A stretch of 64,000 nucleotides of DNA. It comes from Oculina patagonica (taxonomy: Eukaryota). A model generated the notes under the pieces. The model was given only the letters and a program-made list of their open reading frames with translations. It ran no database searches and had not been told where the DNA came from. This document shows, piece by piece, positions 640-27,800 of the stretch (its first letter is position 1; each line of letters begins with the position of its first letter). The stretch is from assembly GCF_052425735.1 (NCBI RefSeq), contig NC_135771.1:2914001-2978000 (forward strand), given 5' to 3'. Position numbers and translations under genes: made by a program.

Positions 640-3127
640 CATGCGGGCAGGTTGTTAATAACACCCTGACAAGTCCTGGATATCCCTACAATTACCCAAA
701 CAACATGGACTGTGTTTATTGGGTCCCTATTCCAGCTGGCAAGGCAATGAATATTTACTTCAGCGAATTTTACTTGGAGCGTTCTTCGACCTGCCGGTAA
801 GAAACGAGATAACAATCAAAATATATCCATGGAGTGAATATAAATCACTGATTAGGTCAATTCTTATTTTTTTGTTTCCACCACTTCGTTTAATGATCTA
901 AATGGATGTTTTTTCAGTGCTCAGTATATCTTACCTTTTTTCAAAACAAATTAAAATAAGCTTCAAAGTTGTAAAAACATTATGATGCAAGAAAGAGAGT
1001 ATGAAGTTGATCCCCTCTTGTGCGTAAACTAGTTTATTATTAAGCTAATGGTTCACACAAAAATTCGCTTGCCGTTGGTTGTTTTAGCGAGCATTAAAAT
1101 GATATGCAGAGAAAGATAGCACTAGGCTACCGATAGTTTGTCTTCATAATTTTGTTGTGTGCCAGGATTACTACAGTTTTGAAGGGTTAATTATCCAAAC
1201 ATTAGACTCTTTTTGTAAAATCTTCAGAAATATTTTGTCTTTCTCTTATATTACTGTTTGTTACAGCGTACAACCACCATATGCAGCAGAAAAATCTGTA
1301 AGACAGATTTTGAGCTATTTTAAAATAGGCAAAATACCACATTTTCTTATTTTGCGAAAAATTTATCTTACAGATTTGTATTTTATTTTGCATGAATGTT
1401 TAATCAGAGCCAATCTCTAATTCCTGGAATTTTGAGGTGGGGGTCATATGTTTAGATTTTGAGAAAACAGACGTCGTTCATTTTGGCTGTTTATTAGCAT
1501 TTTTATTCTTCCAATGTCGCATATGATGATTGTGCACAGTAGCAAACAGCAATAAGAGGAAGAAAAAACATTTCTGAAGATTTTACAAAAGAGTATAAAA
1601 TTGGGCTCATTTACCCCCTCAAAACCGTTATGTCTGATAGCAGAAACCGATAAGGTTTTTTGACGATATTCAACAAAGCAATCCTCATTGCTAGCCCGCA
1701 TAAATTTCTCATGGCATTGGTTCGAAGACTCTGTCAAACAATCAATTAATTTGGTGATCACCTTCTCAAATTATTATGGCTTATTTTATTCGCAGCTGGG
1801 ACTATTTGGAGATCACCAACGAAAACAATCAGACATTCGGGAAATACTGCGGCTCTAAATCTGGATTGACCGTCGTTGTAACTGGACAATACGTTGTGTT
1901 AAAGTTCCACTCTGACGGATCTTTTACCCTCAAAGGATACCGGTTAACTTTCACTGCCCTCTGTGAGTACGGTCACAGCGGATATGGTATTGACCAATTC
2001 CGAAAGTAATTTAAATTATTCACCGAAGTGGATGTGAATAATTGTTAATTCACTGACACAGAGGTGAATAATAATTGTTTAAGTATATACCACACAAGTT
2101 GAATAACTAGCGGACTAAAACACTTTCGGTAGACAAAGCGACACGGCCAGGCAGTTTGTTTCTCGTTAGCTGCTTGGAGGTGAATAGTACTTTGTAAGTC
2201 ACCTCCGAGTTTACCAAACAGCGCACGCGAAAAGCACTTTTTACTTGTGTGGTATATACTTACTACTGTTAAAGCGGTTTTAACTTGAGTGCCGAAAGTA
2301 ATTTGCGTTTGCTTTGGTTTTGCATTGCTACGCCCATTAATTGGTTTAAAAATCTCTCGCCCCTTTTCAGAAAATCAGAACCAAAACCAAAACCAATCGT
2401 GTCTCGCTCGCGCACGTTTTCCCGCGCTTCGTGCCGGCTGCATATATTGCTTCGAGTTTTGATTGGTTGACTGGATTGTCTATGTCCTTTGTGATTGGCT
2501 AGAGTGATTACTATGGTTTTGGATTTACGACACTCATTTGAAAACTGCACTAATTTTTGTCGCCCAGTTGAAACATATAGAATATATCTGTATGGAGTTT
2601 TAAAAGAAAATTAATATCATTTTGCTGTGTATAATTATGGTTTGCTGCGTTTATTATTCACTATTTTTCCGCCTTGTTTGTCTTAGCTCCAGGAAATATC
2701 AGCACATCAGCACCAAACACGACTAATCCACCATCCAGTAAGTATAGCAGGTTCGCCAGTAGACCGTGTGTGCTCAGCATTTTACCCCAAGAAAATCAAT
2801 GATTGGGTGCCCTATGATTCCATAACTAAAGAGGTAACATTTCTGGTAAATCTTTCTAAATATTTTACACGACCTCCACTCTAGCGCTCATCTTCTTCCA
2901 ACAGACACGGAACGCAGGAATTGATGTTTCTCCTAGTACTTTACCTTTGTAGAGAACTATACTGCTTTTGTTTTACGAATTGGTGTCAGTTGATCCAAAA
3001 GACTTATATCAGCTGTATAAATTTGGTTGTGTATATCTTGTCTTTTTAGTTTATTAACACTGCTATTTGATTCTTGTAGACTACACAACTAGTCCGCCTC
3101 CGCCAACTACCACCTCACCACCAAGCG
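640..3127 (+). CDS. CUB cassette unit 1 (exons A, B, linker C, linker D)
   Basis: A: CGQVVNNTLTSPGYPYNYPNNMDCVYWVPIPAGKAMNIYFSEFYLERSSTCR; B: WDYLEITNENNQTFGKYCGSKSGLTVVVTGQYVVLKFHSDGSFTLKGYRLTFTAL; C: PGNISTSAPNTTNPPS; D: YTTSPPPPTTTSPPS. Confidence 0.9.
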
Positions 3128-6100
3128 GTAAGATGGAAATTATTTTACTGACCCACGGTCGGAGCAGCTATGACTCCCACGAGGAGTTCTAAACTGGAAA
3201 CGATACAATCCATTGTTAGAAACTCACAACAACGTAAAATAATTGGTTGCTTGCTCGAACACTCGATTGTTTCGTTAAGTGGTAAGGTTACTTAGCTGTT
3301 AGCTCTGCTAAGGTTGTGAGGAGGGGGGTAGGGTTGGACGTGAAGTATTTTCTCACAGTGGTGGAGGCGAGGGTACCCTGCTGGGCTGGGTCGCTATGAT
3401 TCCTTAATTCACGTGTTGTTCTGCAACAAAAGCGCGAATTTTTTTTCAAATAACACAGGCGCTTTTGAAACGCAGACTTTCTTTCCGATGCTGTCGTATG
3501 TTCTCTTGGGGGCTTATTTCTTTTTCAGACCTTTTGAGGGGCGGGAAGGGAGGGGGGGGGACTACAGGGGTGACTAAAGAGGAGGGGGCTTAATAAGTCT
3601 TTTACGGTAAGTGCCCCTCCCTCTCCCCTAATTTCTTGCGTAGATGTCATCTGGGCTGGTCAGGCGTTTTTCCCAAATCCTGAAGGGAAAATAGCATGAC
3701 GATCCCAAAGCAACTCTGCGTAGGAGGCCACCCTTTCCCCGATTACAAGGCTCCCTCACTCAAAAAGAACCTTAATTGTAAGAAAATAAGCCCAAAGCTT
3801 ATAATCAGGATTTTAAGGGGCATGATGTGAGCGCAAATATTAAAAGATATTTTTTTGCTTTATAGTATGCGGGCAGGTTGTTAATAACACACTGACAAGT
3901 CCCGGATACCCAAACAATTACCCAAACAACATGGACTGTGTTTATAGGGTCCCTATTCCAGCTGGCAAGGCAATGAATATTTACTTCAACGAGTTTGTCG
4001 TGGAGTATCAGATATACTGCAAGTAAGGAACGAAATAACAAGCAAAATATATCCATGGAGTGAATAGAAATCACACTGATTACGTCAGTAACATTTTTAT
4101 TTTTTGTTTCCACCACTTCGTTTAATGATCTTAATGGGTTTTTCCAGTGCTCAGTATATCTTACCTTTTTTTCAAAGTGAATTAAAATAAGCTTCAAATT
4201 TGTAAAAACATTATGATGCAAGAAAGAGAGTATGACGTTGATCCCCTCTTGTGCGTAAACTAGCTCATTATTAAGCTAATGGCTCACATAAAAATTCGCT
4301 TGGCGTTGGTTGTTTTAGCGAGCATTAAAATGATATGCAGAGAAAGATAGTACTTGGCTGCCGATAGTTTGTCTTCATAATTTTGTTGTGTGGCAGGCTT
4401 ACTACAGTTTTGAGGGGTAAATTAGCCAAACATTTAAATCTTTTTGTAAAATCTTCAGAAAAATTTTGTCTTTCTCTTATTGCTGTTTGTTACAGCGTAC
4501 AGCCACCATATGCGGCAAAAAAATCTGTAAGACAGATTTTGAACTATTTTAAAATAGGCAAAACACCACATTTTCTTATTTTGCGAAAAAATTATCTTAC
4601 AGATTTGTATTTTATTTTGCATGAATGTTTAATCAGAGCCAATCTATATTTTCTGAAATTTTGAGATGGGGTCATATGTGTAGATTTTGAGAAAACCGAC
4701 ATTTAAACCGGGTACTAGTGCCCAGTCCTTTCTTAAGCACTCGGTCGTTCATTTTGGCTGTTTATTAGCATTTTTATTGTTCAAATGTCACATATGATGA
4801 CTGTGCGCAGTTACAAACAGCAATAAGAGAAAGACAAAACATTTCTAAAGATTTAACAAAAGAGTATAAAGTTGGGCTCATTTACCCCCTCAAAACCCTT
4901 ATGTCTGATAGCAGAAGCCGATAAGGTGTTTTTGCCGATATTCAACAAAGCAATCCTCAGCTCGGGAAAAACTAGAAGCATTCTATGAAGAGAAAACAAA
5001 AGGAATAATTATACGTGCACGTGCCCGATGGCACGAACATGGTGAAAAAAGTACAAAATATTTCTTGAACTTAGAGGAAAGAAATCATGTCAAGAAATGT
5101 ATACGAAAATTATACATTAATGGTGTAATTAACACAGATCCGACTTACATTTTAAGGGAACAGGAACGTTTTTATTGTGATTTATATAAAAGTGGCAATA
5201 ACGATCCAGACATTGCCCTAAAAAGGTCCACCTTTTTAGGTGATTTAAATATACCCAAACTTTCCGAGGAACAGAGAAGAGAGTGTGAGGGTAAAATCTC
5301 GCTAGAAGAATGTTCTTGTCTCCTTGATAGCTTTCGCGATAACAAAACACCAGGAAACGATGGCATTCCTATTGAATTCTATAAAAAATTCTGGCCTCTA
5401 ATTGGCGACAGTTTTATAAGATGTGCAAATGAGTGTTTTGAAAAAGGTGAGTTGTCCTGCTCCCAAAAACAAGCGGTGATCACTCTTATCGAGAAGAAAG
5501 GAAAAGATCGCTCACTCCTTGAAAATTGGCGCCCAATTTCCCTTGTTAATGTTGATACGAAAATTATGTCAAAAGTAATAGCTTCAAGAATTAAAAATGT
5601 TTTACCCGAGATTATTCATCACAACCAGACAGGATACGTCAAGGATCGCTTTATAGGCGAAACTGTTCGATCTATTTACGATGTAATGGACTACACTGTC
5701 GAAGAAAACATCCCAGGCCTCATGATTTTTATTGATTTCAAAAAAGCATTTGACAGTGTAGAGTGGGATTTTCTTTTGAAATGCCTAGAAGCTTTTAATT
5801 TTGGCCCAGACTTCATTCGCTGGGTCAAAACGTTTTATAAAAACATACAAAGCTGCACCATTAATAATGGTACTACGACCAAGTATGGACTGAAGTCTGT
5901 AAGATACTGGGCGGCGAACGCCTGGAATCAACTGCCAGACCGAGTAAGAACAATTGCTACACTACAGGCCTTTCGTAATGCTGTGCGCAGCTAGATAGTC
6001 CCTTTTTAATTTTAAAATTAATTTAATACTTATTTATTAATGAATTTTTCGTTCTGTATATATTTTTACATTTGTAATTTATTTTCTCGGCATATTAGCA

Positions 6101-9100
6101 TATGTTTTGCTAGGGGCCTAGCCAGCCCCCGTCAGCTCCGAGGGTAAATAAATTTTATTGATTGATTGATTGACTGCTTCACGATATTTTACGCTCGAGC
6201 GAGGTGTCCGGCAGGGAGATCCACTCTCCCCTTACCTTTTTATATTAGTCGTTGAAACTCTGGCAATCGCTATGCGTCAAAACAAAAGTATTAAAGGAAT
6301 AATGATCGAGAACGAGGAAACTAAGCTTTTACAATATGCAGATGATACAACTGCAGTGCTCTCAGACATTAATTCAGCAGAAACATTGTTTGAGTTATTG
6401 GATAGTTTTAAAGCGATTTCGGGACTTGAGATAAACTGTACAAAAACCGAAGGCATGTGGATTGGATCATCTAAGGAAAACAAAACGAAACCCTTCGGAA
6501 TCAAATGGCCGAATGAACCGATTAAGGCCCTTGGAGTGTATTTCACTTATGATCAGAAACTGCTTAAAGAAAAGAATTTCATTGAAAGATTGGACAGCAT
6601 CAAAAAGCTTATCAACATTTGGTCCTCAAGAGGCCTATCAATTTACGGAAAGGTGACAATTATAAAATCATTTCTAATCCCAAAATTTGTTTACACATGC
6701 TCGCTTTTGCCCACACCTAACGAATTGGTTAAACAATTGAATCAATTGCTATTTAAATTCCTGTGGAAAGGAACAGACAAAGTAACACGCTTGTCAGCAA
6801 TAAATGAATATGGGAAAGGTGGCCTAAAAATGATCGACCTAGAGAACATGGTTAAATCTTTAAGATTAGCATGGCTAAAACGAATATTTAATGGCAATGA
6901 TGGAACATGGAAGCAGTACTTAAAACACCAATTAAAATCCATTGGGGGTCTTTTCTTTTTTAATTGTAACTACGATGTTAACGATTATACAATCTCTTCC
7001 CAGTTTTATCGTGAACTGTTATTGTGGTGGTCGCAATTCCGCGAAAATTTTGCTACCGAAAGGAACTGGCAAAACATCATTTGGAATAACAAAGAAATAC
7101 GAATAGACAACAAGCCTGTTTATTACAAAAATTATGTTGAATCTGGAATCATCTGTATAAAGGATCTGCTATTCAATTTAAACAATATTGACTCCTTTGA
7201 CCGCGTTTCATATAAAATAAGTAAAACTAATTTTTTACAATGGGCAGGCCTTCGCCACTCTATACCCAACCTTTCAAAAGGTAGATATGCATGCCCGTCA
7301 CTTACATCTCCTTCATTCTTCATTGACCACAACATCTTCGACGTGAAGAAAAAGAAATCAAAAGATTATTATTCGCTTCTTGTTATGAACAAAGCACAGC
7401 CTCCTAATATTGTTCATAAATGGAAAAGCGATTTCAATATTTCGGATGATCAACTACGAGAATTTTTCACATTACCTCATTCCGTTGTACTCGAATCATA
7501 TGTAAAGGCCTTTCAGTACAAAGTACTTAACAATATTCTTTACACGAACACGAAATTACACAAAATTGGTTACAGAACAAATGATTTATGTACTTTCTGT
7601 GAGGCGGAACCAGAAACTTTGTATCACTTTTTTTACCAGTGCTCCCGCGTCAGGCAGTTTTGGAATGATTTTGAATCTTACTGGTACCTCTTATCAAATC
7701 AAGTAGTTCGTCTTACTTTGCAAAACGTTTTGTTTGGAATAATATCAAAACAATGCCCTTCACTTGATTTACTAAATTATTTTATTATTATTGGAAAATT
7801 GTTTTTGTGGGACTGCAGAAGAAACCAAACATATCCTAAAATTCAAGGTTATCAGAACAAAATACTTACTAAATATGAAACTGAAAAGAAAATTAATAAG
7901 AAAAGATATTTCGAAAAGAAGTGGATATATTCTCCCAGATAATAAGTAAGGAATTATAGTGCTAGATTCGCTTTTTTTTTTTTTTCGTGTGTTTGTTGCT
8001 TATTTCTCTTTGTTGCGTGTATTAATTTCGATTATTAAAAGTCCAAACTATTGATGTAAACTTGCTATATGGAAATTATTATCATCTGTTACTTAATTGT
8101 AAATTAACACTTGTTACTTTTTTTTATTCCAATCACCTATGTAATGCTAAGTGTGTAAATATCAATAAAGGAAAAAATTAAAAAAAAAAAAAAAAACAAA
8201 AAAAAAACAAAGCAATCCTCATTGCTAGTCCGCATAAATTTCTCATGGCATTGGTTCGAAGACTCTGTCAAGGAATCAATCAATTTGGTGATCATCTTCT
8301 AAAAATTATTATGGCTTATTTTATTCGCAGCTATGACTATTTGGAGATCACCAACGAAAACAATCAGACATTTGGGAAATACTGCGGCTCTAGATCTGGA
8401 TTGACCGTCGTTGTAACTGGGCAATACGTTGTGTTAAAGTTCCACTCTGATCGCTCTTTTACCTACAAAGGATACCGGTTAACTTTCAGTGCTTTCTGTA
8501 AGTACGGTCACATACAGCGCATATGGTATTGACCCATTCCGAAAAGAATTAACAATTATTCACCGAAGTGGACGTGAATAATTGTTAATTCACTGACACT
8601 GAGGTGAATAATAGTTGTTTAAGTAAGTCTTTAAGTATATACTACACAAGTTGAATAACTAGCGGACTAAAACACATTCGGTAAACAAAGCGACACGCCA
8701 AGGCAGTTTGTTTCTCTTTAGCTGCTCAGAGGTGAATAGTACTGAGCTAATTGCCTCCGAGTTTACCAGTTAGCGCGCGCAAAAAGCACTATTCACTTGT
8801 GCGGTATATACTAACTACTGTTAATTTTTGTCGCCCAGTTGAACCATATAGAATATATATATCTGTATCCACCACCAGTAAGTATAGTAGGTTCGCCAGT
8901 AGACCGTGTGTGCTCAGCATTTCACCCCAAGTAAAAAAAAAATGATTGGATGCCTAATGATTCCATAACTAAAAGAGGTTACATTTCTGGTAAATCTTTC
9001 TAAAAATTCTACACGACCTCCACTCTAGCGCTCATCTTCTTCCAACAGACACGAAACGCAGGAATTGATCTTTGTCTTTTCGTTTTACGAATTGGTGTCA

Positions 9101-12100
9101 GTTGATCCAAAAGACATATATTAGCTGTATAAATTTGGTTGTGTATATCTTGTCTTTTTAGTTTAATAAGACTGCTATTTGATTCTTGTAGACTACACAA
9201 CTAGTCCGCCACCGCCAACTACCACCGCACCACCAAGAGGTAAGATGGAATTTATTTTAACTTACTAACAGTTACTGACCTACGGTCGGAGCAGCTATGA
9301 CTCCACGAGGAGTTCTAAACTGGAAACGATACAATCCATCCTTAGAAACTCACAACAACGTAAAACAATTGGTCGCTTGCTCGAACACTCGTTTGTTTCG
9401 TTAAGTGGTAAGGTTACTTATCTGTTAGCTCTGCTAAGGTTATGAGGAGGGGGAAGGGTTGGGGGTGAAGTACTTTCTCACCGTGGTGGAGGCGAGGGTA
9501 CCCTGCTGGGCTGGGTCGCTATGTTTCCTTAATTCACGTGTTGTTCTGCAACAAAAGCGCGAATTTTTTTTTCAAATAACACAGGCGCTTTTGAAACGCA
9601 GACTTTCTTTCCGATGCTGCCGTATGTTCTCTTGGGGGCTTATTTCTTTTTCAGACCTTTTGAGGGGCGGGAAGGGAGGGGGGGGGGGACTACAGGGGTG
9701 ACTAAAGAGGAGGGGGCTTAATAGGTCTTTTACGGTAAGTGCCCCTCCCCTAATTTCTTGCGCATGCGCAGATGTCATCTGGGCTGGTCAGGCGTTTTTC
9801 CCAAATCCTGAAGGGGAAAATAGCATGACGATCCCAAAGCAACTCTGCGTAGGAGGCCACCCTTTCCCCGATTACAAGGCTCCCTCACTCAAAAAGAACC
9901 TTAATTGTAAGAAAATAAGCCCAAAGCCTATAATCAGGATTTTAAGGGACATGATGTGAGCGCAAATATTAAAATATATTTTTTTGCTTTATAGTATGCG
10001 GGCAGGTTGTTAATAACACACTGACAAGTCCCGGATACCCAAACAATTACCCAAACAACATGGACTGTGTTAACTGGGTCCCTATTCCAGCTGGCAAGGC
10101 AATGAATATTTACTTCGACGAGTTTGTCGTGGTGTATGGATGGAGGTGCCGGTAAGAAACGAGATAACAATCAAAATATATCCATGGAGTGAATAGAAAT
10201 CACACTGATTAAGTCAATAACATTTTTATTTTTTGTTTCCACCACTTCGTTTAATGATCTTAATGGGTTTTTCCAGTGCTCAGTATATCTTACCTTTTTT
10301 TCAAAGTGAATTAAAATAAGCTTCAAATTTGTAAAAATATTATGACGCAAGAAAGAGAGTATGAAGTTGATCCCCTCTTTTGCGTAAACTAGCTCATTAT
10401 TAAGCTTATGGTTCACATAAAGAATTCGCTTGCCGTTGGTTGTTTTAGCGAGCAAATGATATGCAAAGAAAGATAGTACTTGGCTGCCGATAGTTTGTCT
10501 TGATAATTTTGTTGTGTGGCAGGCTTACTACAGTTTTGAGGGGTAAATTAGCCAAATATCTAAATGTTTTTGTAAAATATTCAGAAATATTTTGTCTTTC
10601 TCTTATTGCTATTTTTTGAGCTATTTTAAAATAGGCAAAACACCACATTTTCCTATTTTGCGAAAAAACTGTTTTCCAGATTTGTATTTTATTTTGCATG
10701 AATGATTAATCAGAGCCAATCTCTAATTTCTGAAATTTTGAGATGTGAAATGTTTAGATTTTAAGAAAACCGACGTTAAAACTACTAGTGCCCAGTTCTC
10801 TCTTAAGCACTCGGTCGTTCATTTTGGCTGTTTACTAGCATTTTTATTGTTCAAATGTAGCGTATGATGGTTATACGCAGTAACAAACAGCAATAACAAA
10901 CAGCAAAGAAAGAGAAAACATTTCTGAAGATTTTACAAAAGAGTTTAAAGTTGGGATCATTTTCCTCCTCAAAACCCTTATGTCTGATATCAGAAGCCCA
11001 TAAACTGTTTCTGCCGATATTCAACAAAGCAATCCTCCTTGCCAGTCTTCAAAGAGTTCTCAGGTATATATAGGTATGTGCCGCTGTACATGTGAAGGGT
11101 ATGGGTTTCAAGCAGTTTAGTCTGGGATAGGGTACAGAATAAGAGAGTTTTGGTCTAGAATAGGGTATCATTTGCCGGGAAACTGATCAGTGGTATGAAG
11201 AATGAAGTCCAGAATAGGAATAAAATCTCGGAAGAGAAAGAGGCTTTCCTAAACGTAAATAAAATCATCGCGGCAACGTCGCTGACAGATGGTTTTCAAA
11301 AACACTAAATAGTGATACAGTTCTAAATTAAAAAAGCAAGTATGTGATAGGGTAGGGATTTCTGGTGTCCAGTCTGGTATAGGGTTGCAAAATCAGCTGA
11401 ACATGGTCTGGTATAGGGTAAGGGTTTCAGAGTCTTAGCGGCACACCCTCAGCCCCCCAAAAAGAATACCCCCCTCCCCGGGTGGTTCGAAGACTCTGAC
11501 AAAGAATCAATTAACTTGGTGATCATCTTCTCAAATTATTATGGCTTATTTCCTGCGTAGCTATGACTATTTGGAGATCACCAACGAAAACAATCAGACA
11601 TTCGGGAAATACTGTGGCTCTAGATCTGGATTGAACGTCGTTGTAACTGGACAATACGTGGTGATAAAGTTCCACTCTGACGCGTTTGTTACCAACAAAG
11701 GATACCGGTTAACTTTCAGTGCCTTCTGTAAGTACGGTCACAGCGCATATGGTATTGACCCATTCCGAAAAGAATTAACAATTATTCACCGAAGTGGACG
11801 TGAATAGTGGAGGATATTTACCTCGCCGCGACTGACTTGTTTTAGTACATACCACACAAGTTGAATAACTAGCGGACTAAAACACTTTCGGTAAACAAAG
11901 CGACACGCCAAGGCAGTTTGTTTCTCTTTAGCTGCTCGGAGGTGAATAGTACTTTGTTAATCACCTCCGTGGTAATCAATCAGCGCGAAAAGCACTAGTC
12001 ACTTGTGTGGTATATACTAACTACTGTTAATTTTTGTCGCCCAGTTGAAACATATAGAATATATATCTGTATCCACCATCCAGTAAGTATAGCAGGTTCG

Positions 12101-15100
12101 CCAGTAGACCGTGTGTGCTTAGCATTTCACCCCAAGAAAAACAAATGAGTGGTTGCCTAATCATTCCATAACTAAAATGGTGACATTTCCAGTAAATCTT
12201 TCTAAAAATTCTACACGACCTCCACTCTTGCGCTCATCTTCTTCCAACAGTCACGAAACGCAAGAATTGATGTTTCTCCTAGTACTTTTCCTTTGTAGAG
12301 AACTATATTGTTTTCGTTTTACGAATTGATGTCAGTTGATCCACAAGACTTATATTAGCTGTATAAATTTGGTTGTGTATATCTTGTGTTTTTAGTCTAA
12401 TAAGACTGCTGTTTGATTCTTGTAGACTACACAACTAGTCCGCCACCGCCAACTACCACCGCACCCGGTAAGATGGAATTTATTTTAACTTACTAACAGT
12501 TACTGGCCCTCGGTCCGAATCTATATTATCTTCCCACGCGGAGTTCTAAACTGGAAACGATACAATCCATTGTTAGAAACTCACAACAACGTAAAATAAT
12601 TGGTCGGGATGGTCGGGAGTTGGGGGTGAAGTATTTTCTCACAGTGGTGGAGGCGAGGGTACCCTGCTGGGCTGGGTCAGTATGATTCCTTAATTCACGT
12701 TGTGTTCTGCAACAAAAGCGCAAAATTTCTTTCAAATAACACAGCCGCTTTTGAAACGCAAATTTCTTTCCGATACTGCCATGTAAGCTCTAGGGGGCTT
12801 ATTTCTTTTTAAGACCTTTTGAGGGGCTGAGGGGGGGGGGGGGGGGGACTACAGGGGTGCTTAGAGAGGAGAGGCGCTTAATAGATCTTCTACGGTAAGT
12901 GCCCCTCCCCCTCCCCTAATTTCTTGCGCAGATGTCATCTGGGCTGGTCAGGCGTTTTTCCCAAATCCTGAAGGGAAAATAGCATGACGATCCCAAAGCA
13001 ATTCTGCGTAGGAGGCCACCCTTTCCCCGATTACAAGGCTCCCTCACTCAAAAAGAACCTTAATTGTAAGAAAATGAGCCCAAAGCTTATAATCAGGATT
13101 TTAAGGGACATGATGTGAGCGCAAATATTAAAATATATTTTTTTGCTTTATAGTATGCGGGCAGGTTGTTAATAACACACTGACAAGTCCCGGATACCCA
13201 AACAATTACCCAAACAACGCGGACTGTGTTAATTGGGTGCCTATTCCAGCTGGCAAGGCAATGAATATTTACTTCAACGAGTTTGTCATGGAGTATCACT
13301 GGAGCTGCCGGTAAGAAACAAGATGACAATCAATTGCAAAGTATATCCATGGAGTGAATAGAAATCACACTAATTACGTCAATAACATTCTTATTTTTTG
13401 TTTTCACCACTTCGTTTAATGATCTAAATGGATTTTTCACCAGTGCTCAGTATATCTTACCTTTTTTCAAAGTGGATTAAAATGAGCTTTAAATTTGTAA
13501 AAACATCATGAGGCAAGCAAGAGAGGATGAAGTTGATCCTCTTTTGTGTACGACATTAAGCGTAAACTAGCTCATTATTAAGCTAATGGTTCACATAAAG
13601 AATTCGCTTGCCGTTGGTTGTTTTAGCGAGCCAATGATATACAGAGAAAGAAAGTACTAGGCTGCCGATTGTTTGTCTTATATTTTTTTGTGTGGCCGGC
13701 TTACTACAGTTTTGAGGGGTAAATTAACCAAACATTTAACTCTTTTTGTAAAATTTTCAAAAATATTTTGTCTCTCTCTTTCTCTCTTACAGCATTCAAA
13801 CACCATATGCAGCAAAAAATCTGTAAAGGCCGATTTACACGGTACGATTTTGTCGAATGCGATATGCTTGCAACATGTTTACGACAGGCCTACGACACGA
13901 ATTGTGACGTGTAAATCAAACCTACAACTCGCTTACGACTGTCGCAGGCGTGTCGTAAGCTTCTCGCATGCGACAAAATCGTACCGTAAAAGATAAGATA
14001 AGATAAGAAACTTTATTTAAGTGTCAAAGCCTTATAGCCTGGAAAATAAAACCATACTAATTAAGGGACACTGCTAAAAACTAAAAGCTACACTAATACT
14101 AAATATAAATACAATAAAAATATATATAAGTCATATAAAAAATGTTATTATAATCTATGGTGTAAAAAATGTTAAAATCTTATAATAATGTTTTGACTTG
14201 AGAGGCACTAAGTGCAGCATAGGATGCATCCCTTACAGCCGCTGTCCATTAAGGGAGTTATATCTTTTTTGCGAATACGGTTTGTGAAAGCCTGCAGAGT
14301 CTTGGCTGATCTGTCAGCCGTAGAAAGTTTTCCCCATAGTTTGGGTCCTACATAACGCAAAGAGTGCTTTCCATAAGTAACAGTGTTGTATCTAGGAGTA
14401 GAAAAATCTGATTGTCTCAGGTTATACGTGGAATTATGCTCGTTAAAAATGTTACAGATGCTATTTGGACATAATCTATGTTTAACTTTATACATTAAGG
14501 CCGATTTACCGTGTAAATCGGCCTTAAGACAGATTTTGAGCTATTTTAAAATAGGCAAAACACAACATTTTCTTAATTTGCGAAAAATGTATCTATCAGA
14601 TTTGTATTTTATTTTGCGTGAATGTTTAATCATAGACAACCTATAATTTCTGAAATTTTGAGATCAAATGTCCAATGTTTAGATTTTGAGAAAACCGACG
14701 TTGTTCATTTTGGCTGTTTATAAGCATTTTTATTCTTCCAATGTCGCATATGTTGATTGTGCGCAGTAACAAACGGCAATAAGAGAAAGACAAAACACTT
14801 CTGAAGATTTAACAAAAAAGTTTAAAGTTGGGATCATTTACCCCCTCAAAACCCTTATGTCTGATAGCAGAAGCCCATAAGGTGTTTCTGCCGATGTTCA
14901 ACAAAGCAATCCTTCTTGCTAGCTTGCTAGTCTGCATAAATTTCTCATGGCATTGGTTCGAAGACTCTGTCAAACAATCAATCAATTTGGTGATCACCTT
15001 CTCAAATTATTATGGCTTATTTTATTCGCAGCTGGGACTATTTGGAGATCACCAACGAAAACTATCAGACATTCGGGAAATACTGCGGCTCTAAATCTGG

Positions 15101-18100
15101 ATTGAACGTCGTTGTAACTGGACAATACGTTGTGTTAAAGTTTTACTCTGACGGCTCTAATAGCTACAAAGGATACCGGTTAACTTTCAGTGCTTTCGGT
15201 AAGTACGGTCACAGCGCATATGGTAATGACCCATTCCGAAAATTATTAACAATTATTCACCGAAGTGGAGGTGAATAATTGTTAATTCACTGACACAGAG
15301 GTGAATAATAATTGTTTAAGTATATACCACACAAGTTGAATAACTGGCGGACTAAAACACTTTCGGTAGACAAAGCGACACGGCCAGGCAGTTTGTTTCT
15401 CTTTAGCTGCTTGGAGGTGAATAGTACTTTCTAAATCACCTCCGAGTTTACCAAACAGCGCGCGCGAAAAGCACTATTCACTTGTGTGGTATATACTTAC
15501 TACTGTTAGAGCGGTTTTAACTTGAGTGCCGAAAGTAATTTGCGTTTGCTTTGGTTTTGCATTACTACGCTCATTAATTGGTTTAAAAAACTCCCGCCCC
15601 TTTTCAGAAAATCAGAACCAAAACCAAAACCAATCGTGTCTCGCTCGCGCACGTTTTCCCGCGCTTCGTGCCGGCTGCATATATTGCTTCGAGTTTTGAT
15701 TGGTTGACTGGATTGTCTGTGTCCTTTGTGATTGGCCAGAGGGATTACTATGGTTTTGGTTTTACGACACTCATTTGAAAACTGCACTAATTTTTGTCGC
15801 CCAGTTGAAACATATAGAATATATCTGTATAAAGTTTTAAAGCTATATTTATGAAAAGTCACAACTTTGCAGTCTTTATTTTAACGGTACACTTTAAAAC
15901 TTCAGAATATCAGATTTTTTAATTTATTTTTTATTATGAAGTGATAATTTAAAAGAAAATTAATATGTTGCTGTGTATATGGTTTGCTGTGTTTATTATT
16001 CACTATTTTTCCGCCTTGTTTGTCTTAGCTCCAGGAAATATCAGCACATCAGCACCAAACACGACTAATCCACCATCCAGTAAGTATAGCAGGTTTGCCA
16101 GTAGACCGTGTGTGCTCAGCATTTCACTCCAAGAAAATAAATGATTGGGTGCCTAATGATTCCATAACTAAAGAGGTAACATTTCTGGTAAATCTTTCTA
16201 AATATTTTACACGACCTCCACTCTAGCGCTCATCTTCTTCCAACAGACACGGAACGCAGGGATTGATGTTTCTCCTAGTACTTTACCTTTGTAGAGAACT
16301 ATACTGCTTTTGTTTTACTAATTGGTGTCAGTTGATCCACAAGACTTATATCAGCTGTATAAATTTGGTTGTGTATATCTTGTCTTTTTAGTTTAATAAG
16401 ACTGCTGTTTGATTCTTGTAGACTACACAACTAGTCCGCCATGGTATACCACCGCACCACCAAGTGGTAAGATGTAATTTATTTTAACTAATACTAACAG
16501 TTACCGACCCACGGTCCGCATCTGAAAATTAACTCCTCATGAGAAGTTCTAAACTGGAAACGATACAATCCATTGTTAGAAACTCACAACAACGTACGTA
16601 AATAATTGGTCGCTTGCTCGAACACTCGTTTGTTTCGTTAAGTGGTAAGGCTACTTATCTGTTAGCTCTGCTAAGGTTGTGAGGAGGGGGGTAGGGTTGG
16701 ACGTGAAGTATTTTCTCACAGTGGTGGAGGCGAGGGTACCCTGCTGGGCTGGGTCGCTATGATTCCTGAATTCACGTGTTGTTCTGCAACAAAAGCGCGA
16801 ATTTTTTTTTTCAAATAACACAGGCGCTTTTGAAACGCAGACTTTCGTTCCGATGCTGCCGTATGTTCTCTTGGGGGCTTATTTCTTGTTCAGACCTTTT
16901 GAGGGGCGGGAAGGGAGGGGGGGACTACAGGAGTGACTAAAGAGGAGGGGGCTTAATAAGTCTTTTACGGTAAGTGCCCCTCCCTCTCCCCTAATTTCTT
17001 GCGTAGATGTCATCTGGGCTGGTCAGGCGTTTTTCCCAAATCTTGAAGGGAAAATAGCATGACGATCCCAAAGCAATTCTGCGTAGGAGGCCACCCTTTC
17101 CCCGATTACAAGGCTCCCTCACTCAAAAAGAACCTTAATTGTAAGAAAATAAGCCCAAAGCTTATAATCAGGATTTTAAGGGACATGATGTGAGCGCAAA
17201 TATTAAAATATATTTTTTTGCTTTATAGTATGCGGGCAGGTTGTTAATAACACACTGACAAGTCCCGGATACCCAAACAATTACCCAAACAACATGGACT
17301 GTGTTTATTGGGTGCCTATTGCAGGTGGCAAGGCAATGAATATTTACTTCAACGAGTTTGTCGTGGAGCATCACTGGAGCTGCCGGTAAGAAACGAGATG
17401 ACAATTAAAGTATATCCATGGAGTGAATATAAATAACACTGATTAGGCCAGTAACACCCTTTTTTTTTTGTTTCCGCCACTTCGTTTAATGACTAAATGG
17501 ATTTTTTCTCCAGTTCTCAGTATATCTTACCTTTTTTCAAAGTGCATGAATTAAAATAAGCTTCAAAGTTGTAAAAACATCATGAGGCAAGCAAGAGAGG
17601 ATGAAGTTGCTCCCCTTTTGTGTACGACATTAAGCGTTAAGTAGCTCATTATGAAGCTAATGGTTCACATAAAAATTTGCTTGGCGTTGGTTGTTTTAGC
17701 GAGCATTAAAATGATATGCAGGGAAAGATAGCACTACTAGTAGGCTGCCGATAGTTTGTCTTCATAATTTTGTTGTGTGCCAGGCTTACTACAGTTTTGA
17801 GGGGCAAATTAGCCAAACATTTAACTTTTGTTGTAGAATCTTCAGAAACATTTTGTCTTTCTCTTATATTACTGTTTGTTACAGCGTACAACCACCATAT
17901 GCAGCATAAAAATATCTGTAAGACAGATTTTGAGCTATTTTAAAATAGGCAAAATACCACATTTTCTTATTTTGCGAAAAATTTATCTTACAGATTTGTA
18001 TTTTATTTTGCACGAATGTTTAATCAGAGCCAATCTCTAATTTCTAAATTTTGAGGTGGGGGTCATATGTTTACATTTTGAGAAAATAGACGTCGTTCAT

Positions 18101-21100
18101 TTTGGCTGTTTATTAACATTTTTATTCTTCCAATGTCGCATATGATGATTGTGCACAGTAACAAACAGCAATAAGAGGAAGAAAAAACATATTCTGAAGA
18201 TTTTACAAAAGAGTATAAAATTGGGCTCATTAACCCCCTCAAAACCCTTATGTCTGATAGCAGAAGCCGATAAGGTTTTTTGACGATATTCAACAAAGCA
18301 ATCCTCATTGCTAGTCCGCATAAATTTCTCATGGCATTGGTTCGAAGACTCTGTCAAACAATCAATTAATTTGGTAACCACCTTCGCAAATTATTATGGC
18401 TGATTTTATTCGCAGCTATGACTATTTGGAGATCATCAACGAAAACAATCAGACATTTTGGAAATACTGTGGCTCTAAATCTGGATTGAACGTCGTTGTA
18501 ACTGGACAATACGTTGTGATAAAGTTCTACTCCGACGCGATTGTTACCCGCAAAGGATACCGGGTAACTTTTAGTGCTATCGGTAAGTACGGTCACATAG
18601 TCCGGCGGCTTAGCTCGAAATTTTAGTTGAATTGTGCACTTTTTGATACAAGCATGCAACTTGGCACAATGAAAGTGGTCACCAACAGAAGATTTTTCAG
18701 ATATAGTGCCAAGCCCGAAATACGCCAGTTTCCATGGAAACCGTAATTTATTAAAATCAATGGAATTTCGTGAAAGCTCGTGAAATATTTGTTTGTCCTT
18801 GTTTATAGACAAATACTTTTATGCCAGGTAGTGATACCAAGTCGCACGTACAAAATTTAGAATGAAATGCTGTAATTTAGACTGTTCACAGCCCTCTATA
18901 TTTTCCTATTTTTCTTCTGTTAGCGAGCGGCGAACGCTGGGATTGGAGAATGAATCCTGAGAGACCTGGACGCTAGCGCAAAACGAAAGACGCGAGGGGC
19001 AGAGGGCGGGGAACAAAAAATCTTTTTCCATGCAATAACTTTATAGTAAAAATTATTGGTTAAAGATGGTTAAAAAATAACAATTGTAAGCCTAATTTAA
19101 AGCATTCATATCTGTATTTTTGAAATAAAATCTACAATAAAAAGTGTATAAAAGCACAAGAAGAAGTAGTTCGTGGGGGAGGGGCCTCTTGGCTGAAAAT
19201 TTCATTGCTACTTACTAGCTGAAAATAGGAAATTAGCGTTGGCACTATATCGAGAATTGATTAGTATGTGAATGCTTGAATCCTGCAAAGTTTGGTGCTT
19301 GTATCAAAAATCGCACAATTCAGGAGCTAAGCCGCCGGACTAACAGTGCATATGGTATTGACCCATTCCGAAAATAAGTGACAATTATTCACCAACGTGG
19401 AAGTGAATAGTGGTGGGTAATTACTGACACTGAGGTGAATAATTGTTTTAGTATATACCACACAAGTTGAATAACTTGCGGACTAAAGCACTTTCGGTAA
19501 ACAAAGCGACACACCAAGGCAGTTTGTTTCTCTTTAGCTGTCCCGAGGTGAATAGTACTTTGTTAATCACCTCCGAGTTAACCAATCAGCGCGCGCGAAG
19601 AGCACTATTCACTTGTGTGGTATACACTTACTGCTGTTAATTTTTGTCGCCCAGTTGAACCATATAGAATATATATCTGTATCTACCATCCAGTAAGTAT
19701 AGTGTGTTCGCCAGTAGACCGTGTGTGCTCAGCATTTCACCCCAAGTAAAAAGATAATTGGATGCCTAATGATTCCATAATTAAAGAGGTAACATTTCTG
19801 GTAAATCTTTCTAAAAATTCTACACGACCTCCACTCTAGCGCTCATCTTCTTCCAACAGACACGAAACGCAGGGATTGATCTTTGTCCAAGTACTTTTCC
19901 TTTGTAGAGAACCATATTGTTTTCGTTTTACGAATTGGTGCCAGTTGATCCAAAAGACTTATATCAGCTGTATAAATGTTTTTGTGTAGTTATTGTCTTT
20001 TTAGTCTAATAAGACTGCTGTTTGATTCTTGTAGACTTAAACACAACTAGTCCGCCATTGCATAACACCACACAACCAAGCGGTAAGATGGAACTTATTT
20101 TAACTTACTAACAGTTACTGACCCACAGTCCGAACCTATATTATCTTCCCACGAGGAGTTCCAAACTGGAAACGATACAATCCATTCTTAGAAACTCACA
20201 ACAACGTAAAATAATTGGTCGTTTGCTCGAACACTCGTTTGTTTGATCTGGTAAATTATGAAACCGAGATCGAGGCTTCAATACGTTTTTTGGCAAGTTT
20301 GGCATGTAACCTTCATAACAAATCGGTCAGTTCTAGGTTGCTAGACGGAATTCTCAAAATTGTCAATTATGTTATTAACAATGCACAGATGACAATATCA
20401 CAGAATTGTGAAGTCACTGAAGAGCTACTAACAGGAATGATAGTGACGTCATACCACATGTGGGTTTCGTCCAATGGTCTTTTGAGCTGTGGTTGATTGA
20501 TTGTGTCACTTATTACTCACAACTGTATAGATTGCCTAGGCGATCATTCCTCAATTTACAGCATTTACTGATTTACGCCGTGACTACTTTGTGTTGTGAT
20601 AAGTTCGCTTCTGTTAAAACCCGTAAAACCGAACAGTTAACCTCCTTATTAAAGTTTTTTTCAATTTTATCCGCCCTGGTTTACTGCATCACCACCAAAC
20701 ACTAACCGCAAACTGCACCCTGTGTGATATATAGTTTCTCTTTATCTAAATAAAACCAGTCGTGTTATTTGTCCTTATTAATTAAATTAGTTTGCGTTGA
20801 AGTTTGTTTTTTATTGTGCGTGTAAGGAACTCAAACTATTCGCCCTAGTCTACCATATATATTACCACCAAAGGGCATTAAATAAAATAAAAAATTGAGA
20901 ATTTACAACGGCATCTTCCACATAGTGATTCCAGATCAGTGATTCTAAATTGGAATTTAGAAGTGTTGGTTTTTGTGGAGGGAGGAAAACCGGAGAACCC
21001 GGAGAAAAAACCTCGGAGCAAGGACGAGAACCAACAACAAACTCAACTCACACATAACGCCGGGTCTGGGGATCGAACCTGGGCCACATTGGTAGGAAGC

Positions 21101-24100
21101 GAGCGTTCTCACCACTGCGCCATCCCTTCTTCATTTTTATCTCGATTTTAACTATAGACTGCCGTATCACATCATAACAGTTCTTCTTAATAATAATTGT
21201 TTTTTTATTTTTTTATAGGCGGATGTGGATATGTGCAAAACAACACACTTACTAGTCCTGGATATCCAAACAACTATCCGAATAACATGGACTGTACTTA
21301 TTCGATCCACATCCCACACGGCAAGGCGTTAAGAATTGTTTTCGAATTTTTTAAAGTGAACGACTGCGGGTAAGTAACTACGTACGAACGCTTCATGGGA
21401 AATGACCATCAAGTTCGTTGAAATATAAAAATAACCTCTTAAAACAGTGAAAGAACATTTCAATAACACACCAAATACAAAAGAAGGTACGGATGGCCAA
21501 ATGCGACGAAGATTGAAACGGATTGCGATACTCGGGTTTTTGAAATATTGTTGGGCTAAACAGTTATCAAAAGTTAATCTTGTTTGTTTGTAAATTTAAA
21601 TTCTAACGACCGGGAGACACATTTGGTTGCAGTGAAGCAATGGTTTTGTCATTTAGATCCATAGAAGTAATTTCTTTGCAAACATAAAGTTTCATAGCGA
21701 GTATTTGGCAGAACTTAATAAAATAAACTAACTCAGCCGTGACACAGTCCCTTTATCTGATATGAACACATCACTAGCTATTGCCGCAGAGAACAGGAAA
21801 TGAGAACTTAACGTGCATTGCCTAGCTGCCATCATATCCTTAACCAGGGCCTTGCCGTCTGCCTCTTGCTAGTTACGGCCCTGCCTTAACCAAGCAGTAA
21901 GCGTGAGATTAACATGTTTCGTAATATAAATGAAGCAAATAGACCCCAACTTACACATTCCTTTTTTTAAAAACCACAGCTTTGACTATTTGAGGATCAC
22001 TAACGAGAGAAACCAGACACTTGGAGAGTTCTGTGGAAATAAATCTGGACATGATGTAACTGTGTCTGGACATTACGCCGTGATAACCTTCCATTCAGAT
22101 AGCTTTGTTACTGACCAAGGATACAAGCTGTATATCTTTTTTTCATACGGTAAATCATATTGATTTAATTCATAAGAAGAAAGCAAAACTTCTCCAGTGA
22201 AACGGGAAAAGAGAACTAAGTGTCTTGTTAAAGAAAATCGGACAAACGCAGACTAATACAAACTACTTTCTACCAACGTAAACTTATAAAAAAGGGGCAG
22301 CTTCAAGCCAAGTGGCGCATACTGCCGGAGCGGAATATTTCTACTCTCCCCTGGATGGGATGCTAGTTCGTCGCAGGGTCCCCCCCCCACCCCATAGCAT
22401 TATTTCGCCGGTCCGGCGCGCTTATTATTAGGCCACTGCGCCTCCCACTACGAAAACTTATAAACAGATGTTTCATTTGACTCTGCAAAAGATCGTGATT
22501 GCTTCTTTATGTTACTCTTTTAGGAAATTTAATAACCCAAACGGTATGAAAATAATTTCAAGTAGATTTTTTACTGATGAAAAACGGTCTAAAATACATC
22601 GGAGATGTATTTTAACAACATAAAATTTTAAGCTTGGTTCAAATGAGTATTGGAGCATTTAATATGCTTGAGTTTCATTTTTTGTCCTGTTATTTATGCA
22701 GGAAATGCCAGCACTTCTCTCCCATGGACGACTTATCCACCATACAGTGAGTGTGTTATAGTTACCAATGTCGAAAAATGAATGTTGTTGACCGCTTACG
22801 TGTAACTCCCACAAATAAACTGCATCTTTCGCTATTTTAAAGATTATACCAAAAGAATATACTGATTGGGCATTGAGGCGACAATGTCTAAAATGTTATC
22901 TAAAACAGGAGAGAAACATATTGCGGTTTTCAAAAACATGCTTACTCTGAAATTCAAGACTCAACTAACGATTGCGTTCTTCGCTGTCGTCAATCAGGCA
23001 ACGAACCTTGAAAAACAGAAACAAACAAAATAGATCGAAATCCACCAATCACAACTGACAGACATGACATTTTGAACCGGTTGAAGTGATGATTGACGGC
23101 AGCAAAAAACGTAAACCGTTGGGTATGATTTGAACTTCAGAGTTCGCATATCTTTGAATACTGCAATAAAGTTAGTTTGCGCAGTACTTGATTCATCACG
23201 AAAATTGGCATCAGTTATCTTGTGTCATGGTCTCTTGTAATATAATTATCAACAGGTTTTCAATTTTGAGACCTCTGAGAAAATACTTTGGCCCTCAATA
23301 ACTTTTTTTTTTGTAAATTTATTACATTTCTGTATTGCTGGTTTTCACTGTCACGCAATCAAAAAATAAATTCGAAACCATTCAACTACAGAAGCTATGA
23401 ATTTCAAATATTATAGATGTTAAATATATAAACACTTTCTTCAAGTTTCGGGTCTGTGCGGTGTACCGTTCGCGAGTTATTTTCCGAACTTTTCCACGTA
23501 AATTTATAAACCTTAGTATGGAGCCGCCATAACTGTGTCCTGCCGAGGGACACAGTAATGGCCGCCGTGATGTCAGAGAAACCATCTGGAACTCAATTCT
23601 GTTTACAACAGCGGCCATCCTTGGCTTAAGAGCTAGTACACTTTCACATAAACACCACTTATTATATCTGAATTGTTCATTCTGCACAAAATGGAAAGGA
23701 AAGGCCTTTTTTCAAACAAAACAGCTTTGTCACGGCACTCAGCTTGATGTCACATACGACGGAGAACTCAAATATTCAAAATGCTCTGTTTTAAAAACGA
23801 ATGACACTATCGATCTGGAAATTTGCAAAAATATATATTTTTAGTTTATCTTTCGCCTAATGACAACGAAAATTTAGCACGCGTAGTGAATTTTGATTTC
23901 AGAATTTTATGACGTAACATAAAAACCAAGAATACAGGCTAGGTCTTGGCGGATTGTGCTCCTAAACGTGGCATATTATGCTACCAGCAGCTGTGCTCCA
24001 AATTTTGCCAAACTGATTATGCCCAAATTATGCTCCTGATTTCCGAAACTATGCTCATAAAATGATGTAGATCCTGTACAAAGAGGCGCGCAATAACGGC

Positions 24101-24835: not shown

Positions 24836-27800
24836 GTAAGTCATTTATTGTTAATTTAATATTTAGCGATTTAACCTTTCTCATCCATTTGTTAATCTTT
24901 TGTGTTCATACTAAACTGGCCGCCAAGCCTCGTTAGCATGTGCAAAGAACAACAAGACTTTGAACCGGTAGGGAGGCTTGGCGGGCAGAAAGAACACAAA
25001 AGAATACCAAATGGCTGAGAAAGGTCTAGCCAGTACGCAAGTTCAACTTGAGCATGTTTTGTATCTATTTTTTATAGTTGATGTTATGTCTTAAAGATGA
25101 ATTACAGTCCGTACTGCGCAATCTCGGCTGCAATGTTTATGTGAGCCTCACAAACAAAGCAAAACTAAAAATTACGTGACAAACTTACCTGTTTCTTCAT
25201 TATTAACGCCAGATATCCTTGCAGAACAAATAATAACAAGTAGAAGAACCTTGACGCTATTTCAAACCGACGTTTCAGCTCATCGGAAGTTCTTGAACGA
25301 AGCGAACTGTAATGGCGGACTAAAAAAACTTCATGTATGCTGTCACCGAAGTGTAACATTTCAACGAATTCAAAACAAAAACGTAAACAAACCCCGAGTC
25401 TGCGCAGTACGGACTGGAAATCAGCTTTAAACGATATTATCAACTTAATAAATGTAGATGTAGAACTTGCGACTACTGGCGTCCATTTGCGTTACCGTTT
25501 GGCCAGGGCTTTATTATATTTTCTATGATAAAAAGTGGCTTGATTTTTCCTTAAATTTCAGTAAACTGCAACACTACTTGTACACTTTGCGAGCCACACT
25601 TAATGAGGTAATGGTATACGTATACTTCACGCTGATATCGTTTTATTCATTGTTTTATTATTAAACCCTATCCAGATAGGGGGGGAGGGGGGGGGGCGGA
25701 AAGTGCTTGCGCTGACTTTTAATGCTTATTACTTTTTCAAGATTCAACCAAACGCTGCCAAACTTTACGAGTTTATCTAAAATTTATCTGGGAATTATAT
25801 TCTTGGATAGGTTGTTGTGTCGGGAATATGACGTCACCATGACAATGGCATTTTGACAGACATGTTTTCCCACATTTGTAGTTTTTGTGTTCTTATCAAT
25901 GAAAATTAATTTATAAGTACTTTTATGCAATTATGAGTACTTTTTTATCGATTTTGGGCGGTTATCTGACGTTTTGGAAAAATTTTGAAATCCAAGATGG
26001 CGGCTGTATTGACATCATGATGTAATTGTAACGTGATGTGACGTCATCATCCCACGTGACGTACATCAAAAGATAGAATTTTTGACCGTTTTGAAATATC
26101 TTTTTTAGTTTAAGAGATATTTACTTTTTTGTATTATGCAAATGAGGAAAGTAATGACGTCATTAATCGTCCCACAAAAAGATAAAACATTGAATGAAGA
26201 GTTTCTCAAGAAATATTAGAGCGGGGTTATTCAAACGTGGCACCATAAATGTACAGAACAGTTCAGTATGTTATATCGTTCCGTTATACGGTATTTCCTT
26301 TGTTCCTTTGGTATTACAGATCGTTACAAAGATCCTACGTGAAAATATGACTGATTCACTTAGTTACAATATTTCTTGTTGTCAGTTTCATATGTATCAT
26401 TAGCAACAGCGTAAAAGACTTAACTTTTCAAAGTTATGTGGTGAATTAAAGCCACTTTCTTAATCCCTCCCTTGATACCTTTAAATGGCGTTAACTGAGA
26501 GTGTTTGTTTCTCGACTACATTTCATAGATGGAAAAGATTGTGGACAACGAACTTCAATCAAAAGTCTCTGTCAGGAGCTACAAAGGTATTACTGCATTA
26601 ATCCGTCTAGACGCATTGTGCATCTTGTAGTTTATCTTTAGTATAGGAACTATTCAGTTGCGTTTTCTTGTTGTTTTGGTAAAAATTTAAAACCAAAAAA
26701 GACGCTTGAGCACTTTAGGCCCGTACCTAGCGGTTGCAGGGGGAGGGGGGGGGGGGGAGGCAGTTGCCCCCGCCAGGAAAACTAAATTTCTAACATAGCG
26801 TTTGATTTTGCTGGGCTATTTCTTGTAGCTATATTAGAGTTTGCCCCCGCAGCGGTGTAGAGTGGAGTTTGCCCCTGCAGACAAAAAATCCTAGGTACGG
26901 CCCTGCACTTTCCAGCACGCATACTTTGGTGAATCGATACTGACAATTTTCATCGGGTGATGCTACAGTAATGGTATCAAAAGAATGACCAATAATTGGC
27001 GAACAAGATATGGTCATTTGCTTGACACAACAGATTATCATAGCAATGGTATACTCTATTAACCCCCTCCCCCCCCCCCCTTAATTTCAGGTTTAAGTAC
27101 TGATAATGTGACAACAAGCTAGGAGAATCTCAGTTGCTATTACTAATTTGTGATCAGTATTTTAAAAAACAACTTTTTGCAGAGTTTTAAAACATTCTAC
27201 GGAAGGAGTTTAGAGCCACTTTAATTAATGGCCGATTTTTTCAAGTTTATCGTTCACATTACATGTACATCTTAATCTTTTTCAGTCTTAACTATACATT
27301 TCTTGTTTATTTTTCGGCTTATTAGTACTCCTTGCATTTTCCTCCCACGCACAACTATTATTTTTAGCGTTTTTATCAGTTTGATAGAAATTTTGTACAC
27401 CAGGAAATTAAGCTAAGATGCCGTGACATAAATTGAAACGACTTACAAACCGTCCTGACGAGCTTGTTGTAGCGCCAGCTTTGTCCCTAAACTCTGCTGT
27501 TAGCGATGACGTAACCGAATAGAGCTCGCCTGTTTTCCCGTCCCATGCTTTGCGCGGTCATTGAAACAAGAGAGAATGCCTGGGGACTAGGCTTGCGTGG
27601 CGCTTAAACAAAACGTTGAGTTTTCTGTATTTTAACTCATAGAACGTGTCACGAGGACCCTGTCTGATTTGCATGCCGCAATGAACAGCGGAAGTCGCCA
27701 GAAACGTGACGTCAGGAGGGCAATGGTGATTGGCCAGTTGGAAAAGAAAGCCGCTGATTTGATGAAGAAACTGAACACCAAGGAAGGTTAGTGAAGCGGA

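Follow-up and report, generated by a model that had tools for sequence, protein, structure and literature searches.

A tandem array of two-exon CUB cassettes in the coral Oculina patagonica and the possible re-pairing of its loop-bearing halves

Introduction

Dscam1 carries tandem arrays of similar exons, each encoding half of an extracellular binding domain, with exactly one exon of each cluster being used. Exchangeable half-domain exons, which could in principle alter a binding surface, are likewise found on chromosome C14 of the coral Oculina patagonica, in a stretch of 64,000 nucleotides (nt) that is referred to here as the window and that supplies the coordinates of all exons below. The stretch contains a tandem array of cassettes encoding CUB domains, each domain being split between an exon A and an exon B that each carry one variable loop. 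In contrast to Dscam1, the default in this gene is the inclusion of all cassettes in series with the variants taking the form of skips, and in a minority of the transcript models analysed such a skip places the A half of one CUB beside the B half of a later one.

In its behaviour the closest analogue is DMBT1 (gp340, salivary agglutinin), in which both genetic polymorphism and alternative splicing give rise to variants with different numbers of repeats (PMC3100851). Like DMBT1, the window gene is predicted to encode a secreted glycoprotein with tandem near-identical cassettes, Pro/Thr/Ser-rich spacer exons and CUB domains, and it has what would be looked for in a gene that varies in repeat number, namely symmetric phases, near-identical introns and isoforms from which whole units are missing. 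What is repeated in DMBT1, however, is an SRCR domain encoded by one exon, so that half-domains are not available for re-pairing, whereas the unit here is a two-exon CUB and the window gene has no SRCR or ZP domain. The likeness is therefore functional and the window gene is not a member of the DMBT1 family.

With the vertebrate multi-CUB genes for cubilin (CUBN) and SCUBE1-3 the window gene shares the CUB fold and, in most units, the acidic residues of the Ca2+ site, but it has neither EGF repeats nor a 27-CUB array, its CUBs are separated by mucin-like linkers and its charged C-terminal tail finds matches in coral proteins only. Orthology with cubilin was considered and rejected, Pfam finding only CUB domains (10 in RefSeq isoform X1) and no N-terminal EGF, with the linkers and the tail also differing, such that the RefSeq name "cubilin-like" is an automatic name and not a statement of orthology.

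Organization of the CUB Array

In a tblastn search of the window with the peptides of unit 1, the only coding matches were six pieces of A type and six of B type. These belong to a plus-strand tandem array of ~3.2-4 kb cassettes which, as delineated by its repeat families, occupies the first 23 kb of the window. In unit 1, exon A1 (640-796) encodes the first half of CUB 1 and ends in loop L5, exon B1 (1796-1962) encodes the second half and holds loop L9, and two linker exons follow, C1 (2687-2737, 51 nt), which is Pro/Thr/Ser-rich with N-glycosylation motifs, and D1 (3080-3127, 48 nt), the first window exon in the RefSeq read-through models. Unit 2 consists of A2 (3866-4022), B2 (8331-8497) and D2 (9192-9239, 48 nt), and unit 3 of A3 (9995-10151), B3 (11561-11727) and D3 (12426-12467, 42 nt). 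In unit 4, A4 (13154-13310) and B4 (15032-15198) are followed by both linkers, C4 (16029-16079, 51 nt) and D4 (16422-16466, 45 nt), while unit 5 has A5 (17229-17385), B5 (18416-18582) and D5 (20035-20082, 48 nt). The sixth unit encodes a divergent "type II" CUB, with an A6 (21219-21369) whose L5 is shorter by two codons, B6 (21980-22149) and the linker C6 (22702-22746, 45 nt, phase 1-1), which lies beyond the range of 640-22149 covered by an earlier, sequence-only reading of this DNA.

The A exons measure 157 nt except for A6 (151 nt) and all run from phase 1 to phase 2, while the B exons measure 167 nt except for B6 (170 nt) and all run from phase 2 to phase 1, with an AG acceptor and a GT donor present at every exon. 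These boundaries, read from the sequence, agree exactly with the A and B exon lengths and phases given in the sequence-only reading. That reading also had C and D linkers of 42-51 nt, symmetric in phase (1-1), throughout units 1-5. The lengths and phases hold for the linkers, which are Pro/Thr/Ser-rich with N-x-S/T motifs, but C is not present in every unit, being intact only in units 1, 4 and 6 with units 2, 3 and 5 retaining its last ~12 nt and the donor.

Against the Pfam CUB profile (PF00431) the A peptides match positions 9-54 and the B peptides positions 57-110, both above the gathering score, the two halves together giving a match to the full-length profile of ~110 residues. Each unit encodes four cysteines, of which A contributes two near its start and a third in L5 at its end, while the fourth is in a "YCG" motif of B. 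Exon A thus extends from the start of the CUB as far as L5 with the third cysteine, the fourth cysteine and L9 being part of the remainder in exon B.

All 36 possible A x B joins leave an open frame, 21 of them being pairs in which the B exon belongs to the same or a later unit, and the earlier claim that any A can join any downstream B in frame is thereby confirmed. Each unit is a copy of the others in its introns as well as its exons, with a mean pairwise identity of ~0.90-0.95 along the cassette, intron identities between units of 90-99% and an identity of 98-99% over the 150 nt upstream of exons A2-A5. These identities, with the repeat families, show that the array grew by recent duplication of one ~3.2-4 kb cassette. 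The equal lengths and phases across units are not six independent facts because copies of a cassette inherit them, and since the units were copied from one cassette, chance is the wrong null for their agreement in phase. The permissiveness of A x B joining is true yet trivial, holding for any tandemly duplicated multi-exon cassette.

Neither does the division of the CUB into halves set this gene apart. In SCUBE genes two exons code for the CUB (PMC10214685), a CUB gene on chromosome C10 of O. patagonica, unrelated to this one, aligns to the genome in consecutive half-CUB pieces of ~57-60 residues and the type-II CUBs of a paralogue upstream of the window are split at the same place as those in the window. 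The two-exon CUB is the normal structure of the family, with no special design here. The openness of every A x B join is what would be seen in a dedicated combinatorial system, in which regulated choice of A and B exons would re-pair L5 and L9 to give many binding specificities per individual, as in Dscam or V-J joining. Such a system is considered highly improbable, as ordinary CUB genes share this architecture and five similar units would give a tiny repertoire. Selector or docking elements are not inferable from conservation because the introns are recent copies, and no search aimed at them was made.

Re-paired and Skipped Units in RefSeq Isoforms

At least 28 "cubilin-like" isoforms are annotated by RefSeq at the locus, of which 19 were retrieved and analysed. 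All 19 carry the signal peptide and first five CUBs of the upstream paralogue, termed gene 1, before entering the window at D1, and A1 is found in none of them. The longest, isoform X1, is collinear, running D1, A2-B2, D2, A3-B3, D3, A4-B4, C4, D4, A5-B5, D5, A6-B6, C6 and tail, and shows 10 CUB stretches by Pfam (E 5e-213), the window itself encoding six CUBs. The units A2-B2 through A6-B6 are present in series in isoform X1 and in most of the retrieved isoforms.

Each of the other retrieved isoforms equals X1 minus one in-frame skip, located either in the window or in the part contributed by the upstream paralogue. Within the window, the skips remove a single linker (B3-A4, C4-A5, B5-A6), remove one or two repeat units (D1-D2, D1-D3, B2-C4, B3-C4, C4-A6, D4-A6) or jump to the first tail exon, T1 (B4-T1, B5-T1), with isoforms X10, X13, X18, X21, X23, X25 and X28 missing one or more repeat units or jumping to the tail. 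Skips of whole cassettes, as had been proposed from the sequence, are thus present among the models, a skip from one D exon to another being also present in one of the RNA runs described below. Chimeric CUBs occur in three of the 19 isoforms, X14 (A2-B3), X22 (A2-B4) and X19 (A4-B5). The isoforms are automatic models, for which the annotation pipeline found support for joins of the predicted chimeric kind. A count of A(i)-B(j) pairs in transcript fragments was attempted with a 70-residue junction-spanning protein query of a large protein collection, which gave one unrelated match.

While the three annotated chimeras would fit a dedicated combinatorial system, they account for only three of the 19 models, every one of them as a single event. 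Moreover, the longest model and the RNA joints between successive cassettes are collinear and take in all cassettes, indicating that inclusion is additive and not mutually exclusive in the manner of Dscam. The Dscam- or V-J-like exon choice to which the array had been loosely compared is thus unsupported, the longest model including every cassette in order and nothing indicating regulation.

The account favoured here, and held to be fairly probable, is one of an ordinary architecture in which re-pairing is a by-product, with the variants being produced by sporadic skipping and probably with recombination contributing. Duplication of the ~3.2-4 kb cassette would pass the same phases to every copy, so any A would fit any B, and the default mRNA would be collinear with the cassettes included in order. 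Sporadic skipping of exons would then generate in-frame variants because all of the exon sets are symmetric, and non-allelic recombination between introns that are 90-99% identical could generate further in-frame variants. The products would be variants without linkers or whole units, together with some CUBs made of the A of one unit and the B of a later unit, in which an L5 would stand beside a foreign L9.

RNA Contigs

Assembled contigs from four public runs were examined over window 13000-18999, such contigs giving neither frequencies nor rare forms. The runs are of RNA since their contigs are spliced with GT..AG joints. Collinear joints of this type connect B4 to C4, D4 to A5 and A5 to B5, while contigs with a partner exon outside 13000-18999 were read from their extra letters as D3-A4, B5-D5 (with no C5 between) and D1-A2. 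In RNA run X3, which is labelled as another organism, a D1-like exon runs straight into a D exon at a depth of 90.7 and the D3-A4 joint is seen at the same depth, these joints being consistent with one D1-D3-A4 contig carrying the same skip as isoform X21.

A single chimeric contig was found, in RNA run X1. It is 170 nt long with a depth of 227 and covers 13181-13309, crosses a GT..AG joint from 13310 to 18416 and continues into 41 nt of B. It has five mismatches to the reference A4, of which the four listed are the consensus bases of other units. Its L5 is A4-type because mismatch counting placed it on A4 and not on A5, contigs of runs X2 and X3 with the same upstream bases being placed on A5. 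The B part begins with the Tyr-type start common to B2, B3 and B5 and not with the Trp-type start of B4; over the first 41 nt of B, B5 shows one base difference to B2/B3 and four to B4, differences at the contig end being unlisted. The sample of RNA run X1 therefore has an A4-type L5 joined to a B exon unlike the reference B4. Such a molecule may have come from A4 being spliced to B5, from a recombinant A4/B5 unit in the genome of the colony or from an allelic B4, with the balance leaning towards a germline origin.

Several observations weigh against the favoured account of sporadic skipping. The chimeric introns in the RefSeq models may be mis-assignments or alleles, the risk of mis-assignment existing because reads with short overhangs in near-identical exons are placed by one or two bases, for example those of the Trp or Tyr first codon of B. 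The depth of the chimeric contig (227) is comparable to that at neighbouring exons (150-380), no A4-B4 contig is listed for RNA run X1 and the colonies that supplied the RNA differ from the reference at further diagnostic sites, such as C, C and C at 17314, 17321 and 17325 in A5. All of these would fit a reading in which splicing is always collinear and in which germline differences in the array between colonies, arising from unequal crossover or gene conversion in the A-B introns, mimic skipping once RNA of other genotypes is placed on a single reference, with mis-assignment as a further contributor. In line with this, departures of the contigs from the reference at several diagnostic sites in A4 and A5 imply that the sampled colonies carry other array alleles, the D-to-D skip and D3-A4 joint of RNA run X3 are equal in depth as if on one molecule and a single base separates B5 from B2/B3 over the 41 nt of B. 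Furthermore, introns with 98-99% identity across hundreds of bases are an ideal substrate for non-allelic recombination, and the expansion of different CUB types in the two paralogues points to an unstable array. However, the isoform skips that remove a lone linker of 42-48 nt or that jump to the tail resemble ordinary exon skipping, and the fact that each retrieved variant is X1 with one in-frame skip is what sporadic skipping would give. Germline variation and mapping by themselves are considered an unlikely, if serious, explanation for all of the variants, and sporadic skipping with a probable contribution from recombination is preferred.

The sequence-only reading had proposed that splicing, or unequal crossover in the A-B intron, would re-pair the two halves. 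Re-paired halves are present in isoforms X14, X22 and X19 and in the contig of RNA run X1, but another haplotype of the array, an allele or mis-assignment would fit the contig equally well, and re-pairing by splicing within one genome can be put forward only conditionally. Support for unequal crossover in the A-B intron is no weaker than that for splicing.

The contigs also bear on the reference itself. At A4 sites 13219, 13220, 13231 and 13239 and at A5 sites 17314, 17321 and 17325 the RNA contigs of other samples carry the consensus bases. The reference residues "IAGG" in A5 and "NNADCVN" in A4 look private or allelic, which points to allelic diversity or gene conversion in the array.

Variable Loops and the Ca2+ Site

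Loop L5 spans the A/B junction, taking in ~37 nt at the end of A and one codon at the start of B, while L9 lies inside B. The residues that vary between units cluster at two places, one at L5 (the final ~8 codons of A, the codon split between the exons and the codon that opens B) and the other at L9 (~6 codons of B), which bears out the earlier suggestion of one variable loop per exon. The loop statistics rest on five related sequences and are indicative only. Across units 2-5, 40% of L5 sites are variable compared with intron figures of 10% over the 300 nt preceding A (Fisher p = 7e-6) and 16% following it (Fisher p = 1e-3), while 52% of L9 sites are variable compared with 11-17% in the rest of exon B, the latter serving as comparator since alignment of the introns flanking B is spoiled by unit-specific insertions. 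The summed pairwise ratio of non-synonymous to synonymous variation (pN/pS) was 1.44 for the loop codons and 0.34 elsewhere.

L5 and L9 are long CUB loops that carry the Ca2+ and ligand site, with a conserved disulfide joining L5 and L7 (PMC8051872). By comparison with that pairing, the L5-L7 disulfide would here span the A/B exon boundary. The best relative of a unit among solved structures is, by alignment, cubilin CUB5-8 (3kq4). Alignment to 3kq4 and among the units indicates that the acidic Glu/Asp/Asp of the Ca2+ site is kept in units 1, 2, 4 and 5, whereas the Glu on L5 is replaced by Val in unit 3 (10120-10151, within A3) and apparently by Lys in unit 6 (21340-21369). Binding of Ca2+ and ligand by the CUBs of units 3 and 6 may thus be non-canonical.

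A pN/pS above 1 in the loops, an L5 far more variable than its flanking introns and a ligand site formed jointly by L5 and L9 (PMC8051872) are all in keeping with a dedicated system and constitute, with the open joins and annotated chimeras, what speaks for it. A more general possibility is that L5 and L9 are under diversifying selection in a young, unstable array, in which skipping, A-B crossover or both would re-pair them and provide colonies or cells with different Ca2+-dependent sites, the gene pair then serving the coral in the recognition of microbes, symbionts or tissue that is not its own. This is offered as a speculation with little probability attached to it. If re-paired CUBs were both real and used, they would constitute a simple form of binding-site variation in an animal without adaptive immunity, achieved by swapping an L5 exon against an L9 exon.

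Two Tandem Paralogous Genes

A profile-free search with exon B4 matched multi-CUB coral proteins, and mapping of coral proteins onto 132 kb around the window resolved two tandem paralogues. Gene 1 (chromosome positions 2,859,402 to ~2,897,900; GenBank KAL9950434) encodes a single type-I CUB after its signal peptide, then five CUBs of type II and a tail of its own. Gene 2, the window gene, begins with 5' exons of its own and continues from A1 at 640 through five type-I CUBs and the one type-II CUB of unit 6 to C6 and to five tail exons extending to 28572. A single CUB 53 kb upstream of the window is part of the paralogue, and no other CUB was found in the 20 kb upstream of the window. The two CUB types have thus expanded reciprocally, with one type-I and five type-II in gene 1 and five and one in gene 2. 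Both genes encode predicted secreted proteins with a signal peptide, CUBs, putatively glycosylated Pro/Thr/Ser linkers and a charged C-terminal tail.

The 5' exons of gene 2 lie ~2-4 kb upstream of the window (L001:5955-5984, 6459-6512 and 7923-7991; chromosome positions 2,909,955-2,911,991), with proper splice sites, and provide an intact start codon, the exon for the signal peptide and a third exon whose end is in phase 1. They are 70-83% identical to those of gene 1, the signal-peptide exon being 83% identical, and are unused in all of the RefSeq and GenBank models retrieved. RefSeq fuses the two genes into one read-through locus, "cubilin-like", the retrieved isoforms of which omit the last CUB and tail of gene 1 and the 5' exons, A1, B1 and C1 of gene 2. 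The start of gene 2 given in GenBank model KAL9950436 was rejected, as the first 116 residues of the model correspond to an open reading frame (ORF) of a long interspersed nuclear element (LINE) at 6272-6619, and this N-terminus inside a retrotransposon is an annotation artefact. Literature searches on coral "cubilin-like" proteins turned up no more than a brief reference in a preprint on a skeletal proteome, and nothing on this gene. Of practical value is the corrected picture of the locus, with its paralogues merged by RefSeq, its unused gene 2 5' exons and a GenBank model that starts in a retrotransposon. It also carries the caution that isoform catalogues over near-identical exon arrays can blend splicing, alleles and mapping ambiguity.

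The five tail exons, on the plus strand as is the rest of the gene, lie at 24793-24835, 25562-25607, 26529-26586, ~27643-27786 and 28505-28572, the last including the stop codon, and encode a charged C-terminal tail of ~125 amino acids in which no Pfam domain was found. Tail exon T4 (27643-27786) encodes an R-Q-K-R motif, a possible furin-type cleavage site, within a charged and probably helical segment. Both paralogues conserve this segment, and one resembling it, centred on Q-Q/R-K-R, is found in the tails of related proteins of Montipora and other corals.

Repeats in the Introns

Outside the gene product, the A2-B2 intron contains plus-strand LINE-type ORFs at window 5065-7942, of 309 and 590 amino acids and encoding reverse transcriptase. 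A second element, an interspersed repeat of ~285 bp, is present within the B-C intron in just two units, 1 and 4 (at ~2263-2563 and 15500-15800), and has more than 2,800 candidate copies genome-wide that are 90-92% identical. Contigs of this repeat, placed in the B4-C4 intron, are abundant and reach enormous depth in all four RNA runs. An RNA gene at 15200-16000 was considered for this deeply covered stretch and rejected, the stretch being the ~285-bp repeat and an Rfam search of it giving no match. Units 1 and 4, which carry the repeat, also both keep an intact C exon. The confinement of the ~285-bp repeat together with an intact C to units 1 and 4 suggests that the array grew via duplication of a block of several units.

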